A DNA stretch of 63,893 bases, the filler included, from Hyphochytrium catenoides (taxonomy: Eukaryota > Protista > Hyphochytriomycota), in the NCBI GenBank assembly GCA_900088475.1. It is 8 parts of 8 records of this genome, joined end to end, with 100 filler letters (N's around TTAATTAATTAA, not from the genome) between each part and the next. Parts side by side here need not be neighbours in the genome. Positions count along the whole stretch, not along the records: positions 27,603 to 34,053 come from FLMG01002035.1; 7 more parts are not named here. The stretch is one strand, 5' to 3'. How positions within the stretch are numbered: position 1 is the stretch's first letter; every line of letters starts with the position of its first letter. The position numbers were made by a program, and so were the translations under genes. Below, piece by piece: positions 27,603 to 34,053 of the stretch. The notes under the pieces were generated by a model. The model was not told the origin of the DNA. It searched no databases and worked only from the letters and a program-made list of their open reading frames with translations.

Positions 27603-28009
27603 ACAAGTGCTACAGACAGAGAGGCTTGAGAGAGGGGATCCCTTTTGAGAAAATAGAACCTCTAAAAAGGCCAGTGCCATGGCTGCCGGGTGGGTGGGCC
27701 GGCGGTTGGTTATTATTATGACGAAGGTTCCAGATGTTTGTCCTTGGTGTACAATAATAAGTACAGAAACTACAAGTAAGTAAGTACAGTAAGTACAGTA
27801 AGTATGGCCCAACAAACCCACCAAGTCCAATGCGTTCAAACAGGGAGGAAGATAGTCTGGAACAGCCATGTACACGTACTGTTGTGTTTTACTACAACTA
27901 CGAACGACCTAATATAAAGACAGATCACGGGCATTCCTCTAATAAAGACCGAGCCCACAGTTCTGTTTCTGTGCCTTAGTTGATCGCTTGAACACTTCTC
28001 TTCCTGTCA

Positions 28010-28152
28010 CTGCAGCAGCAAGAGCACCAGCACCAACAGCAGCAGGCGCAACAGCAGCAACAGTCAGCGGCACCGCCGCCATAAACCATCGCCAACAGCA
28101 GCGGCCAGCAACAGTTCAAGAGCAGCAACATCACCACCACCGCGGCACCAGG

Positions 28153-28183
<31 letters not shown>

Positions 28184-28600
28184 AGAGCACCAGCACCAAC
28201 AGCAGCAGCAGCAGCAGCAACAGTCAGCGGCACCGCCGCCATTCATCGCCAACAGCAGCGGCCAGCAACAGTCAAGAGCAGCAACATCACCACCAGCGCC
28301 ATACCACCACCAGCAGCAGCAACAGTCAGCACCAACAGTCAGCAGCAACAGTCAGCAACACCAACGCCATCACCACCAGCAGCAACAGCAGCAGCATCAA
28401 CAGCAACGACAGTCAGCAGCAGCACCAGCACCAGCGTCATACCACCAGCGACAAGCAGCAGTCACAGCAGCAGCACCAACACCAGCGCCATACCACCAAC
28501 AACCAACAACCAGCAGCAGCAGCAAAAGGCAGCAGCACCAACACCAGCGTCATACCACCATCCGCCGCAGCCACAGTATCACCAGCAAAGCAGCATAAAC
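28010..28600. repeat. CAG/CAC/CAA trinucleotide-rich region with an internal ~130-bp duplication
   Basis: Block GCAGCAAGAGCACCAGCACCAACAGCAGCAG...CAAGAGCAGCAACATCACCACC occurs at ~28015-28140 and again at ~28178-28295. Confidence 0.85.
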
Positions 28601-28634
28601 GTCCTCTAAATTGAGAACTTTCCCAAAGGTACCA

Positions 28635-28962
28635 CCTGATGAGATGGCAGAGTTGGTTGGAAGGTCTTCTTCGTTGTGGTGCAAATAGCAGAATGAAGAT
28701 TATGAGCTCGAGGAGAGCTTGACAGACTAGAAGAAGTCCTCAAGTACTGTAAAGCCTAAATATGCAAAGCTATGACGAGGGTTGATATGCAAGAGAGAAA
28801 ACAGAGAAAGGTTCCTCTCTTTTGCATATTAACTTCATAGCTTTGCATACTGAGACTGTGGAGTCCTTTGTCTATCAAGCTCTCCTCGAGCTCATAATCT
28901 TCATTCTGCTATTTGCACTACAACGAAGAAGAGCTTCCAACCACCTCTGCCATCTCATCAGG
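28635..28962 (+). ncRNA. Long foldback / candidate miRNA or hairpin-siRNA precursor
   Basis: 28635-28727 is the reverse complement of 28870-28962 (93 bp, 4 non-Watson-Crick positions). An inner stem pairs 28761-28798 with 28816-28849. The inverted repeat is certain; expression as an RNA is inferred. Confidence 0.55.
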
Positions 28963-29073
28963 GGGAATGAGATGCTGAGCTCGTGCTCCAAAAACCAGGG
29001 ATGAGAGAGAGATGGGCACTCCCCATGCCAGGCCTCGTAAGGTGTCTGTCCACAGAGAGGACAGGAGGAGAGC

Positions 29074-29145
29074 GGTTAGCGCCCAGGTCTCGTTCTTACT
29101 AAGTGAGTCAAGTTCAGCTAGAGCAGCCGCCTTCCACACCAACCA
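29074..29145 (-). mobile_element. Ty1/Copia reverse-transcriptase N-terminal remnant
   Basis: WKAAALAELDSLSKNETWALT matches the Copia W..A...E..SL..N.TW.L motif. Confidence 0.6.
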
Positions 29146-30184
29146 TTGAGAGCTTCAGACTTTCTGCCAGCAACTATAGCACACAGCACCACTTCTAGCA
29201 GCAATAGCATGCATCAGCAACAGCAACAGCGCCTCCTCCTCCTTCTCCCCAAAGATTATCCACCAGCATAATACCCTTTCTAGTAGCAGGTCTGTCTCCT
29301 TATTCTCTCTTCTTCTTTTGAAGTCTAGTCTGGGTGGCTCTTTAGAAAAAGAAAGAACTTCTCTGTTTGACGTCCTTCCTCCTGCGCGGCTTCACTCTAG
29401 CTGAACATCGCTGCAAGTTAGAAGACGCCTACCTGCTTGCGTTCTCCATCGCCATTCTGTTGCTGCTGACACAGAAGAGTCAGAGTGAACAGCGGAACGA
29501 GGAGGAGGAGGCCGAAGAAGCTCGGAGACAAAGAAAGAATGGTCGTGGTGGCACGATAGGTCACGTAAGCTAAGAGAAGGCCATCAGCAGCCCTATGACA
29601 TTAGTGACTGATAAGAATCATGACGCCACCTTTGCAAGACGTAGTAGCATGCGGGGACCTTTCTCATAAAGAACGTGGTGGTGGACGAGCATGAAGTTAG
29701 AGTAGAACAGTCGAGAAAGTGCGTGGTGATGAACAGGGCTGATGGTTACCACTGATAGTACTGAGTGATATAAGGGGAAAGCAGTGAGCTATTAGCAGCA
29801 GCAACCGCAACGCAGGGCAAGAGAGAGTGGAATATGCGATGAACAAACCACAAGTAGAAGGTTGTCATGCTCCTCCTGCTGCTGTGCCACGTTGGCCTGG
29901 CAAGGAGGCGATCCCGCTGGTAGGTGCAAGTACTAGCCTGCTCGACCCTAGCTGTTGCTATCAGAAGGAAGAGAGAGAGCAGTCCTTCATTAGGCCTAGA
30001 AGAGGAAGAAGCGTCGGGAGCTCAGGCAGCGAGCTGCTCATACCAGGCAAGCGGCAGACCTGGAGGTGCACCAAGAGGGAAGAGAATACCGAAGTCTACC
30101 TGCGGTACCAGCAAAGAATAGAGTAGCAGAAGGTAGAGGTTAGGAGCGAGAGAAAGAGAAGGGAAAAGAGCTAGGTAGATAAGA

Positions 30185-30248
30185 CGCAGAGAGAGAGAGA
30201 AAGAGAGAGAGAGGCCTAGAGAACGAGAGAAGGATGAAGAGAGGGTGA

Positions 30249-30289
<41 letters not shown>

Positions 30290-30365
30290 AGAGGCACATA
30301 GAGAGAAACACATAGAGAGACACACATAGAGGGACACCCCTAGAGAGAGAGAGAATGAGAGAGTG
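30185..30365. repeat. (GA)n microsatellite tract
   Basis: GA dinucleotide runs. Confidence 0.85.
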
Positions 30366-30720
30366 TATCTAAGTGGAAGATGCGACGAGAGAAAGACCGA
30401 GGCGACAGTCAGGCAGGCCTGGAACTTGATATAATAACGACTCTTTAGACTTAGTAGCACTAACCACAAACAGAAAATTCTCTACCATCATGATGAAGAC
30501 CGGCGCCTCCTCATAAATAACAGCCAAAGAAGGTAAGTAGAAAGCGAGAGAGAGGACCTTCAAAGATAGCCAGTGGCCGCAGAGGAGCTCCTCAAGCGGC
30601 CGCATAGCGATCTCTTGCCGGTGGGATTGAGACCAACTCTGTCTGCTAACAAGCAATAGAGGCGGGAGGAAGACGGTGTCAGACTGGAAGGAAAAAGGAT
30701 TCTGCCCCATGAGCACAGCG

Positions 30721-33315
30721 TCAGCTGCTGCTAATCGAGGAAGGCGAAGGGGAAAAGAGGGAGAAAAAATGCTTGGCCAGAGCGCTGCGTAGGGCGTCGA
30801 TCTTCAAAGGCTTCATAAGACAGCCATCTAACTGCTTCTCAAGCCAGAAATTCTCGTCAGCCACCACGTTTGCCGTCAAGGCAATGATGACACTCTCTCC
30901 GCCTTCTCTCAAGCTGGCTGTCGAAGACGAGGTGGAAGAGGAAGAGCTGCCCAGGGTCCTACAAGGCGGCTTCTCTTCCGCGTCCATTTTCTCTGCGCAC
31001 TCTCTCCTCGCCGCCTCCAGCTGTCTAATCTGCCTAACGGCCTCGTACCCGTCCATGACCGGCATGCAGATGTCCATCAGGATCACGTCGTACTGACACT
31101 TTGAAGCACACTCTACCGCCTCCTGGCCATTCCATGCCGTGTGTACCTCACGACCTAGGCGGAACTTCAGCTTATCCAGCATTCGGACGACGATTCGCTG
31201 GTTTATGGCGTTGTCTTCCGCGACCAGGATCTTACACTTTGGATGGCCATCAGGACCGAGAAGAGAGAGTGGGAAAGGGTAAGAACCGGCGGCTAGTTCC
31301 TCGTCTGACGAAGAGTTGCGAGGTGTGGAGGAGGACAACTGTCTCTCTAGGTTAGGTGGTGGTGGCGGAGGGAGAGGGACAACAGGAAGAATAGAGCGAC
31401 ACGAGCTTCTTCGGTCATCCCTCATCACTCTGTCACTCTTCTTCTCTTTGGCAGGGCGGAGAGGAATCCAGAAGCTGGCGATTGTCCCTTGTCCCAAGAC
31501 GCTCTCAAGCTTGATGTCTCCTCCCATCAACTGTACCAGTCGACGGCATAGTGCCAGTCCGATCCCAGTCCCATGGTGGGCCCTGGTGGTGCTCTGATCG
31601 ACCTGAGAGAAGGGTTCGAAGAGCTGGCTAAGGTGGTCGTCAGGAATACCTATCCCTGTGTCATAAACAGAGAAGTGCATCATAGCCATTGATGCCGTCT
31701 CGACTGCTTCTGCAGCACTTTCCTGACTGATAGCCGTAGTAGGAGAAGAGGAAGGAGCCTCGCTCATCATGGAAGAGGCTGAAGAGTCAACGTCTTGATG
31801 AAGCTGCTGCTGGGGGCTCTGCATGTGGCGGCGAATGGCGATGACGTTCACTGCTTGGCTGTTGTCCTTGCTGAACTTGACTGCGTTGCCTATCAGATGA
31901 CAGAGAACCTGCTTGACGCGGGCGCGGTCTCCCTCCACCAGCCGCGGCAGTGCAGGATCAAATTCACAATTGATTGGTACAAAGGAAGAACCAGATTTCT
32001 CCAACTCATTTGCTTCTAACGCACAGGAGATGGAGCTCTGGATACATTCAACGAGGTCAAACGCCCCGCTGTCCAGCTTCACGCTGTCTGCCTCCAGCGC
32101 CGCCAAGTCTAGCGTCTCTGAGATGGTCCTCAGCAGGCTGTTGGCACACTTTTCTATGGTGCGGACCACGTGCAGATCCTCCTCACACAGCTTTCCATCC
32201 CGCAGCTCGTCGCACATCCCCAGAATCCCATTCAACGGCGTCCGGGCCTCGTGGTTCCACACTGTTAGCAGCTTGGACTTGAAATCTGAGCTCTTCTTGG
32301 CCTGCTCGAGCTTCACTGTCTGGCTCACATCTTTCAGGCAGCCAACGTACCGGACTACTGCTCCTGCGCTGTCGGTTTCTGGGATGATGACGACATGGCA
32401 TGGGAGCACCTTGCCTGTCTTCTGGTTTACCATGCGCAGTTGTTGACTGTAGACAATAGACGGTTCCTGCTGCGGTTGGATGAACTGTGTCCAAGCGGTT
32501 CTCGCGGCATGAATATCGCCCTCGTCCACAGCGTTAAGCCAGCCAAAACCATGTGCTTCCTCGCTATTCATGCCCAGCTTTCGCCTCCAGGCCACATTCA
32601 CGTACTGGCAGCGGCCCAGCGGGTCAGTCTCAAAGATGCCTACCGGCGCAAGCTCGGTTAGCCGACGGTAATGTGCTTCCTGGGCAGTGGAGACTGGGTC
32701 CTGACGCGCCACCAGCAAAATAATTCCGTTCCGACTTCTTTCTATGTCTTCTTTCCCGTCTCTTCTTCTGTCTTTAAGGCTCAGACGAGGAGAGATGGAG
32801 GCGTAGGAAGGCGCTGAGAAGCTGCAGTGGAGCCGTTCGTAGCTGCCATTCCGATGCCGCAATCGAAGCTGCACCCAGCAGCGCTGCTGCTGATCAGCTG
32901 GCAGAGTCGAAGGAGAGAGCAGCCCCTCACAGTCCAGCAAGACAGCCTCTCGGTCCTCAGGATGGACCAACTCAAGGAAGGAAGCCCGAGACAGCTCAGC
33001 TGGCGTCCAGTCAAGAACACGTTGCCATGCCAGGTTGCACTTCTGCAACTTCCCGCCTCCTTTAATTCTAGAGATGTCGATGACAGCCAACAGTTCTGAG
33101 GAGAGATCGAGAAGGAGAGAGTCATAGCCTCCAGTTCCACCACCTAATGAAGGAGAAGACGAGGCGTTGTTGTTGGCGCAGGAAGCGTGGTCTGGCGCAG
33201 CGGCGGTAGGAGGAGAGGCAGGAAGAGACAGTACCGCTAGTTCCATCTCCTCTTCCTCCTGCCTCTCGTATGTTTCTAAGTTAGCAGCCCTTTTCTTCTT
33301 AGCAGCAGTTTTCAT
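30721..33315 (-). CDS. Hybrid sensor histidine kinase (PAS-PAS-HisKA-HATPase-REC), intronless
   Basis: PAS motifs FLELVHPEDR and APVGIFETD. H-box NHEARTPLNGILG; N-box QVLCHLIGNAVKF; G1 DTGIGI; F-box LFEPFSQVD; G2 GTGIGLA. Receiver: ILVAEDN, ILMDICMPVMDG, IIALTA, KP. First ATG at 33315. Confidence 0.95.
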   Translation of the reverse strand: MKTAAKKKRAANLETYERQEEEEMELAVLSLPASPPTAAAPDHASCANNNASSSPSLGGGTGGYDSLLLDLSSELLAVIDISRIKGGGKLQKCNLAWQRVLDWTPAELSRASFLELVHPEDREAVLLDCEGLLSPSTLPADQQQRCWVQLRLRHRNGSYERLHCSFSAPSYASISPRLSLKDRRRDGKEDIERSRNGIILLVARQDPVSTAQEAHYRRLTELAPVGIFETDPLGRCQYVNVAWRRKLGMNSEEAHGFGWLNAVDEGDIHAARTAWTQFIQPQQEPSIVYSQQLRMVNQKTGKVLPCHVVIIPETDSAGAVVRYVGCLKDVSQTVKLEQAKKSSDFKSKLLTVWNHEARTPLNGILGMCDELRDGKLCEEDLHVVRTIEKCANSLLRTISETLDLAALEADSVKLDSGAFDLVECIQSSISCALEANELEKSGSSFVPINCEFDPALPRLVEGDRARVKQVLCHLIGNAVKFSKDNSQAVNVIAIRRHMQSPQQQLHQDVDSSASSMMSEAPSSSPTTAISQESAAEAVETASMAMMHFSVYDTGIGIPDDHLSQLFEPFSQVDQSTTRAHHGTGIGLALCRRLVQLMGGDIKLESVLGQGTIASFWIPLRPAKEKKSDRVMRDDRRSSCRSILPVVPLPPPPPPNLERQLSSSTPRNSSSDEELAAGSYPFPLSLLGPDGHPKCKILVAEDNAINQRIVVRMLDKLKFRLGREVHTAWNGQEAVECASKCQYDVILMDICMPVMDGYEAVRQIRQLEAARRECAEKMDAEEKPPCRTLGSSSSSTSSSTASLREGGESVIIALTANVVADENFWLEKQLDGCLMKPLKIDALRSALAKHFFSLFSPSPSSISSS

Positions 33316-34053
33316 CGGCGAAGGGAAAGAAACCGCGAAACAGGGAAGACCAGAGAGAGAGAGAGAAAGAGAAGAAAGAGAAAAGAAAGAGGGCAAGAGA
33401 GACAGGATCTAACTAAGTTCTCCTTATCTACTATAAGAGCTCCGGTGGGGACGTCCTGGTGTCTGGGGAAGAGTAGATTGCCGGGAGACTTGCATCGACG
33501 GATTGTCTCCCAGGCAGAGGAGATGATGGCCCACGAATACGCAAGACGCGGAACAGCGAACCTCGTACAGGGGGATGGAGACAAGGATGAGAAAGAGACA
33601 AGAAGCTATGGAAGAAGTGCTGTTATTAGTAGCTCTGAGGCGGGCGATGAGAAAGAACGTGCCAGCCTCGATGTAAAGAAGAGTGAATATGGAGAAGTGG
33701 TGCTGCTGGTCGCCGCCCTGGGCAGACTGTAAAACCACCGGAGCCAGCAGAANNNNNNGGATAGAGAGGGGAAAACGAAGAGAGAGAGAGAGAGAGAGAG
33801 AGAAGGTGAAGACAGGCAGAGAGAATACAGCCTATGCTTCACAGCAATGCAGGAGTGAGTGACGTTCTCACTCAAGGTCAATCATGAAGGTGCTACGAGG
33901 GCGGAGCGCGAGAATTATATCAAAATCAAGAGGGCCAATAGCAGTGCTCCTTTCTCTGCTCACCTTTCCCTTATCACGCTCCATAGGAGCTGAACAAAAT
34001 CAGCCACACTTCCTCGTCTCACAACTACGAGGTCGAGGCATCCGTCGGAAGGG

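Follow-up and report, generated by a model that had tools for sequence, protein, structure and literature searches.

A 334-nt imperfect palindrome in intergenic DNA of Hyphochytrium catenoides, a genuine long inverted repeat that may be a young foldback-type element

The window, i.e., the whole stretch of DNA analysed, is 63,893 nucleotides long and was joined from eight parts of the Hyphochytrium catenoides assembly GCA_900088475.1; all positions given here count along it. The foldback lies in the 6.4-kb part at 27603-34053 (FLMG01002035.1), hereafter called the piece. The only recognisable gene of the piece is an uninterrupted ORF on the - strand (30721-33315/33396, 864-891 aa) coding for a hybrid sensor histidine kinase with the domain order PAS-PAS-HisKA-HATPase_c-receiver, in which the receiver carries a serine-rich insert. 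No close relative of this kinase is present among 5.8 billion proteins; its best relatives, mostly bacterial, are 25-35% identical (maximum 35% over a substantial alignment), and the N-terminal 240 residues have no detectable relative. Look-ups of the exact protein gave no record. When the kinase was used to look for syntenic relatives, the metagenome matches were just 21-54% identical, the higher values being confined to short receiver-domain segments, and the viral collection gave no matches. The divergence of the kinase points to a poorly sampled eukaryotic lineage, and a eukaryotic origin of the piece is indicated by its microsatellites, its low coding density and the low-complexity inserts in the kinase. 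The kinase gene has GA/AG microsatellites on its two sides (a GA tract at 30188-30350, and two others at 33351-33375 and 33779-33803), and a scaffold gap of six N (N6) is found at 33735-33740; together they can be taken as signs of a fragmented short-read eukaryotic assembly.

The foldback is situated between a CAG-rich minisatellite at 28012-28560, repeating every 160 nt (92% matches) and every 113 nt, and a region with no convincing ORF at 28966-30720, in which the small ORFs have no Pfam match. All three + frames are open across the minisatellite and every one of them stops at 28596-28614. A putative two-exon gene on the + strand (27679-27775 and 28016-28614) can be drawn there. It would start with ATG at 27679, use AA|GTAAGT at 27776 as a donor-like site and a pyrimidine-rich tract closed by CAG at 28015 as acceptor, and continue in a frame-2 ORF to TGA at 28612-28614; its product would be a low-complexity protein rich in Ser, Thr, Gln and His, with no Pfam match. 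Such a gene would possibly place the foldback in its 3' UTR, 18 nt past the stop codon. It should be kept in mind that every frame is open in this region and that the splice-like dinucleotides may be there by chance. The ORFs that cross the arms of the foldback have no Pfam match either, in line with the preliminary description of this DNA, where the sequence was called non-coding. The foldback is thus non-coding and lies in repeat-rich intergenic DNA, with both flanks non-coding or of low complexity.

Alignment of the sequence to its own reverse complement over the whole length delimits a 334-nt imperfect palindrome at 28632-28965. It comprises the following parts, none of which has a strand assigned:

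28632-28727, no strand: left outer arm, 96 nt, 95% complementary to the right arm (repeat finder; mismatches listed below)
28728-28760, no strand: left degraded middle section, longer than its partner by about 11-13 bases and with mismatches (self-alignment; 79% inner repeat)
28761-28798, no strand: left half of both inner stems, i.e., 15 bp, a 4-nt bulge and about 19 bp (minimum free energy, MFE, structures)
28799-28815, no strand: central spacer or terminal loop of about 17 nt (MFE structures)
28816-28849, no strand: right half of both inner stems (MFE structures)
28850-28869, no strand: right degraded middle section (self-alignment)
28870-28965, no strand: right outer arm, 96 nt (repeat finder)

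The outer arms are spaced by 142 nt, and the repeat finder detects a second, weaker inverted pair between them (28742-28775 / 28835-28868, 79%). The 93-bp core of the outer stem, 28635-28727 paired with 28870-28962, contains exactly the four non-Watson-Crick positions that had been counted in it: 28653/28944 (U.C), 28664/28933 (G.G), 28678/28919 (G.U), and 28723/28874 (C.A). Outward of the core, three extra pairs, including one A.G mismatch, extend the stem to 28632/28965. The A.G, U.C, and G.G mismatches are of the transversion type, so that the differences between the arms are a mixture of transversions and transitions. A large asymmetric internal loop (28728-28760 / 28850-28869) separates the outer stem from inner stem 1, which is perfect over 15 bp (28761-28775 / 28835-28849); the latter is followed by a 4-nt bulge and by inner stem 2 of ca. 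19 bp (28780-28798 / 28816-28834), with two G-U pairs on the + strand.

The predicted RNA structure of the 28635-28962 segment has an MFE of -226.7 kcal/mol on the + strand and -221.3 kcal/mol on the - strand, against shuffle means of -88 and -84, which corresponds to z = -25.6 (+) and -27.6 (-), none of 100 shuffles being equally good. The full palindrome, 28632-28965, reaches -230.8 (+) and -224.4 (-) kcal/mol with 143 pairs on either strand, and z for the DNA fold is -26. The near-perfect foldback of about 330 nt at 28635-28962 reported in the preliminary description is therefore borne out, and its coordinates are right; the second stem and the terminal loop of about 17 nt placed inside it are both present in the MFE structure, and the folding of both strands that had been proposed as a check gave a strong fold on each.

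The scaffold is short, the assembly fragmented, and the N6 gap belongs to the same piece, all of which would suit an artefact of assembly or amplification (a chimeric fold-back read, for instance, or a hairpin in a de Bruijn graph). Artefacts of this type, however, have identical arms and usually terminate a contig, whereas in this foldback 5 of the 96 arm positions are mismatched, indels distinguish the two halves of the interior, and unique sequence continues for over 1 kb on each side. We regard an artefact as highly improbable, and the earlier judgement that an assembly fold-back is unlikely holds for a repeat located inside its scaffold, between unique flanks and with arms that have diverged. 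The foldback is a long inverted repeat that truly belongs to the genome; its general kind is known, and its structure is far beyond chance.

As regards the strand from which the foldback might be transcribed, a weak preference for the + strand had been proposed on the basis of three G-U pairs on that strand versus one on the other. The count turned out to be different, with three in-register G-U pairs on the + strand and two on the - strand, and five on each in the MFE structures. The energies of the two strands differ by less than 3%. With the G-U pairs balanced and so small an energy difference, no strand can be called, and neither the G-U pairs nor the folding energies carry a strand signal. 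Nothing points to selection at the RNA level, the differences between the arms being of mixed type and the G-U pairs balanced between the strands.

The G+C content of the foldback is 0.44, while the mean for other 334-nt windows of the piece is 0.534, and its observed/expected CpG ratio is 0.31 against a mean of 0.66; both values fall within the lowest ca. 1% of the 334-nt windows, which overlap, so that only about 18 of them are independent and the test is a weak one. The low G+C and CpG values hint at a sequence foreign to its surroundings, or at an inserted or methylated, silenced repeat. The divergence between the two halves is uneven: the outer arms differ at 5 of 96 positions, the middle section at about 10 of 24 and by indels as well (Fisher p = 3e-5). 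This is a pattern in which the termini are conserved and the interior varies, although two or three indel events could also yield it.

A size of a few hundred bp and a palindromic form over the whole length are typical of MITE and foldback repeats. The element under study resembles MITEs and Foldback-type non-autonomous DNA transposons in this size, in the lack of coding capacity, in its intergenic location, in possessing long terminal inverted repeats (the 96-nt arms) with a more variable interior, and in being AT-richer than its flanks. It differs from them in the lack of a target-site duplication (TSD): none of at least 3 nt was found in register with ends that preserve the repeat, where only two out-of-register 3-mers occur, and the longest word shared within 100 nt of either end is of 6 nt, the most frequent length in the shuffles as well and so at chance level. 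The TA dinucleotide is found at the left end only, and we recognised no superfamily-specific terminal motif known to us. Since the TSD is a hallmark of MITEs, the foldback cannot be filed as one of them. A second copy of the hairpin was not detected within the 6.4-kb piece (blastn against the rest of the piece gave nothing above shuffled controls), and a 22-mer from the arm had zero matches in the metagenome, viral and prokaryotic genome collections, which do not contain this organism.

The same observations bear on an origin without any mobility, namely a neutral local inverted duplication produced by fold-back or template-switch repair or replication, which has never moved, is not expressed and is slowly decaying. 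The missing TSD and the single copy in the piece are what it would leave behind, and so is the centre degraded by indels, as palindromes tend to lose their centre of symmetry. The 18 nt directly following the right arm (28966-28983) resemble, in direct orientation, a segment of the left arm (28692-28710), with 16 matches in a 19-column alignment; the likeness could be a template-switch scar or a chance one, as its score is only 21. A local duplication should copy native sequence, yet the composition of the foldback departs from that of the DNA to its left and right, and there is no parental single copy to point to. We consider this purely neutral origin possible, though not probable.

The reading we prefer, tentatively and with a probability of about 0.45, is that of a foldback-type repeat which is young and lacks a dedicated gene function, either a MITE-like relic or a local inverted duplication, whose read-through transcript would be diced. 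Of the two origins, the relic of a non-autonomous MITE-like mobile element would be somewhat favoured by size, architecture and composition, while the missing TSD would speak for the local inverted duplication. Any transcript crossing the foldback, from either strand, would be expected to fold into a hairpin with about 150 bp of near-perfect double-stranded stem. Dicer would cut such a hairpin, provided that the organism has RNAi, into heterogeneous siRNAs of the hairpin RNA (hpRNA) or inverted-repeat siRNA type, acting chiefly in cis or on sister copies, and a single discrete miRNA/miRNA* duplex would not be released.

The structural likeness of the foldback to a small-RNA precursor is real, and that part of the claim that it resembles a miRNA or hairpin-siRNA precursor stands, while the miRNA half of it is disfavoured by the length of over 300 nt and by the outcome of the Rfam search. 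An unannotated small-RNA locus, as proposed in that description, would require that the foldback be transcribed and diced. Rfam covariance models, searched with a permissive E-value, gave only sub-threshold miRNA matches; the best, mir-3202, scored 30 bits where the gathering score is 90, so that the foldback belongs to none of the curated miRNA families at gathering score. As this match occurs on both strands and covers the inner stem only, which is what any hairpin yields, it carries no family assignment. According to the rules for plant miRNA annotation, a foldback should not exceed 300 nt, and the region of the miRNA duplex must contain neither secondary stems nor internal loops larger than 5 nt (Axtell and Meyers, doi 10.1101/213314). 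The palindrome is 334 nt long (328 nt when taken from 28635 to 28962) and has the large asymmetric internal loop, although individual 21-nt duplexes in its outer stem would satisfy the miRNA pairing rule. Tarver et al. (PMC4513859) give mean foldback lengths of 170 nt for Ectocarpus, 140 nt for Chlamydomonas, 136 nt for Arabidopsis, 132 nt for Dictyostelium, and about 82 nt for Eumetazoa, and miRNA annotation demands precise, offset miRNA/miRNA* reads (PMC4513859). The foldback is like the miRNA precursors of land plants, Chlamydomonas, Dictyostelium and Ectocarpus in being a stem-loop in non-coding DNA, and unlike them in being about twice as long as even the longest of these lineage means, almost fully paired, interrupted by a large internal loop and not assigned to any Rfam family. 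The same literature on miRNA criteria names MITE inverted repeats as a common confounder of miRNA prediction, and long transcribed inverted repeats as a source of siRNAs (PMC4513859; doi 10.1101/213314).

The near-perfect stem of ca. 100 bp or more that characterises hpRNA and inverted-repeat siRNA loci is present, with 143 predicted pairs and 95% complementarity over the 96 bp of the outer stem. Given 334 nt, about 150 bp of near-perfect pairing and the large internal loop, the foldback, if transcribed, would be an hpRNA substrate rather than a canonical miRNA precursor; it would thus fit a hairpin-siRNA substrate better, and the miRNA variant is disfavoured. Known loci of the former type include the hpRNA genes of Drosophila and IR71/IR2039 of Arabidopsis. 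The putative transcript would resemble theirs in forming a double-stranded stem of about 150 bp, far beyond that of a miRNA and with very few mismatches, for which RNA-dependent RNA polymerase would not be needed. Those loci have been defined by small-RNA reads and by dependence on Dicer and Argonaute; the foldback, unlike them, has no recognisable target gene.

Whether the locus is a dedicated regulatory gene is a separate matter. Such a gene would be either an hpRNA or a proto-miRNA of recent origin, of the long-hairpin kind found in plants and algae; its transcript would be made for the purpose and diced into siRNAs or miRNAs that silence targets in trans. A long, almost perfect stem would be an ideal Dicer substrate, the absence of a TSD agrees with a gene, and the position 18 nt past the putative stop codon could place the foldback in a transcribed 3' UTR. 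Moreover, the miRNA foldbacks of Ectocarpus, plants, Chlamydomonas and Dictyostelium are long, with means of 132-170 nt (PMC4513859), and new miRNAs are thought to originate from genomic hairpins or inverted duplications (PMC4513859; doi 10.1101/213314). On the other side stand the lack of a strand bias, the Rfam match that is sub-threshold on both strands, and the length beyond both the annotation limit and the lineage means. In addition, the foldback has neither homology nor 21-mer complementarity to anything else in the piece, none of its 21-mers matching the rest of the piece at up to 3 mismatches (mean of the shuffled controls, 0.05), and the arms have no protein-family match, hence no recognisable origin from a target gene. 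On this evidence a dedicated small-RNA gene is unlikely, and its more specific form, a candidate hairpin-RNA gene that the low-complexity + strand ORF possibly carries in its 3' UTR and that would serve a poorly sampled lineage as a young regulator of the proto-miRNA or hpRNA type, is decidedly so. An origin of the foldback by inverted duplication of a recognisable protein-coding gene was also considered and set aside, the ORFs of the arms having no match to a protein family.

If the foldback is transcribed and diced, it would be an endogenous source of hairpin siRNAs in a eukaryote without close representation in public protein and contig collections, and would bear on how often hairpin-derived small RNAs have originated independently. 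The reading as a hairpin-RNA gene, if true, would mean one more independent case of small-RNA regulation based on hairpins. Were the locus a repeat of the foldback or MITE-like type, it would be a routine component of the genome, and mainly a warning that structure alone gives false miRNA calls.

The ends of the foldback are accompanied by splice-like sequences, AG|GTA at 28627-28631 and CAG|G at 28959-28962, found on the + strand only and delimiting a 333-nt unit; with no coding sequence on either side, the pair may be due to chance. They raise the possibility of a cis-acting RNA structure or a hairpin-shaped, introner-like or mirtron-like intron of a + strand transcript, with GT at 28629-28630 and AG at 28960-28961, for which the putative spliced ORF upstream would provide a setting. 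Introner elements are transposon-derived introns known from some algae and fungi. The foldback shares with them an inverted-repeat unit enclosed within GT...AG on one strand, which is a very weak likeness, and differs from them in having neither flanking coding exons nor a TSD, nor a known family of copies. All + frames stop 15-33 nt ahead of the putative donor, the sequence downstream is rich in stop codons, so no coding exon would be joined, and splice dinucleotides at two fixed places easily arise by chance; an intron or cis element is thus very unlikely. GTAAGT motifs occur several times farther upstream, within a tandem repeat at 27750-27804 composed of a 9-nt unit (AAGTACAGT) and a 23-nt unit.
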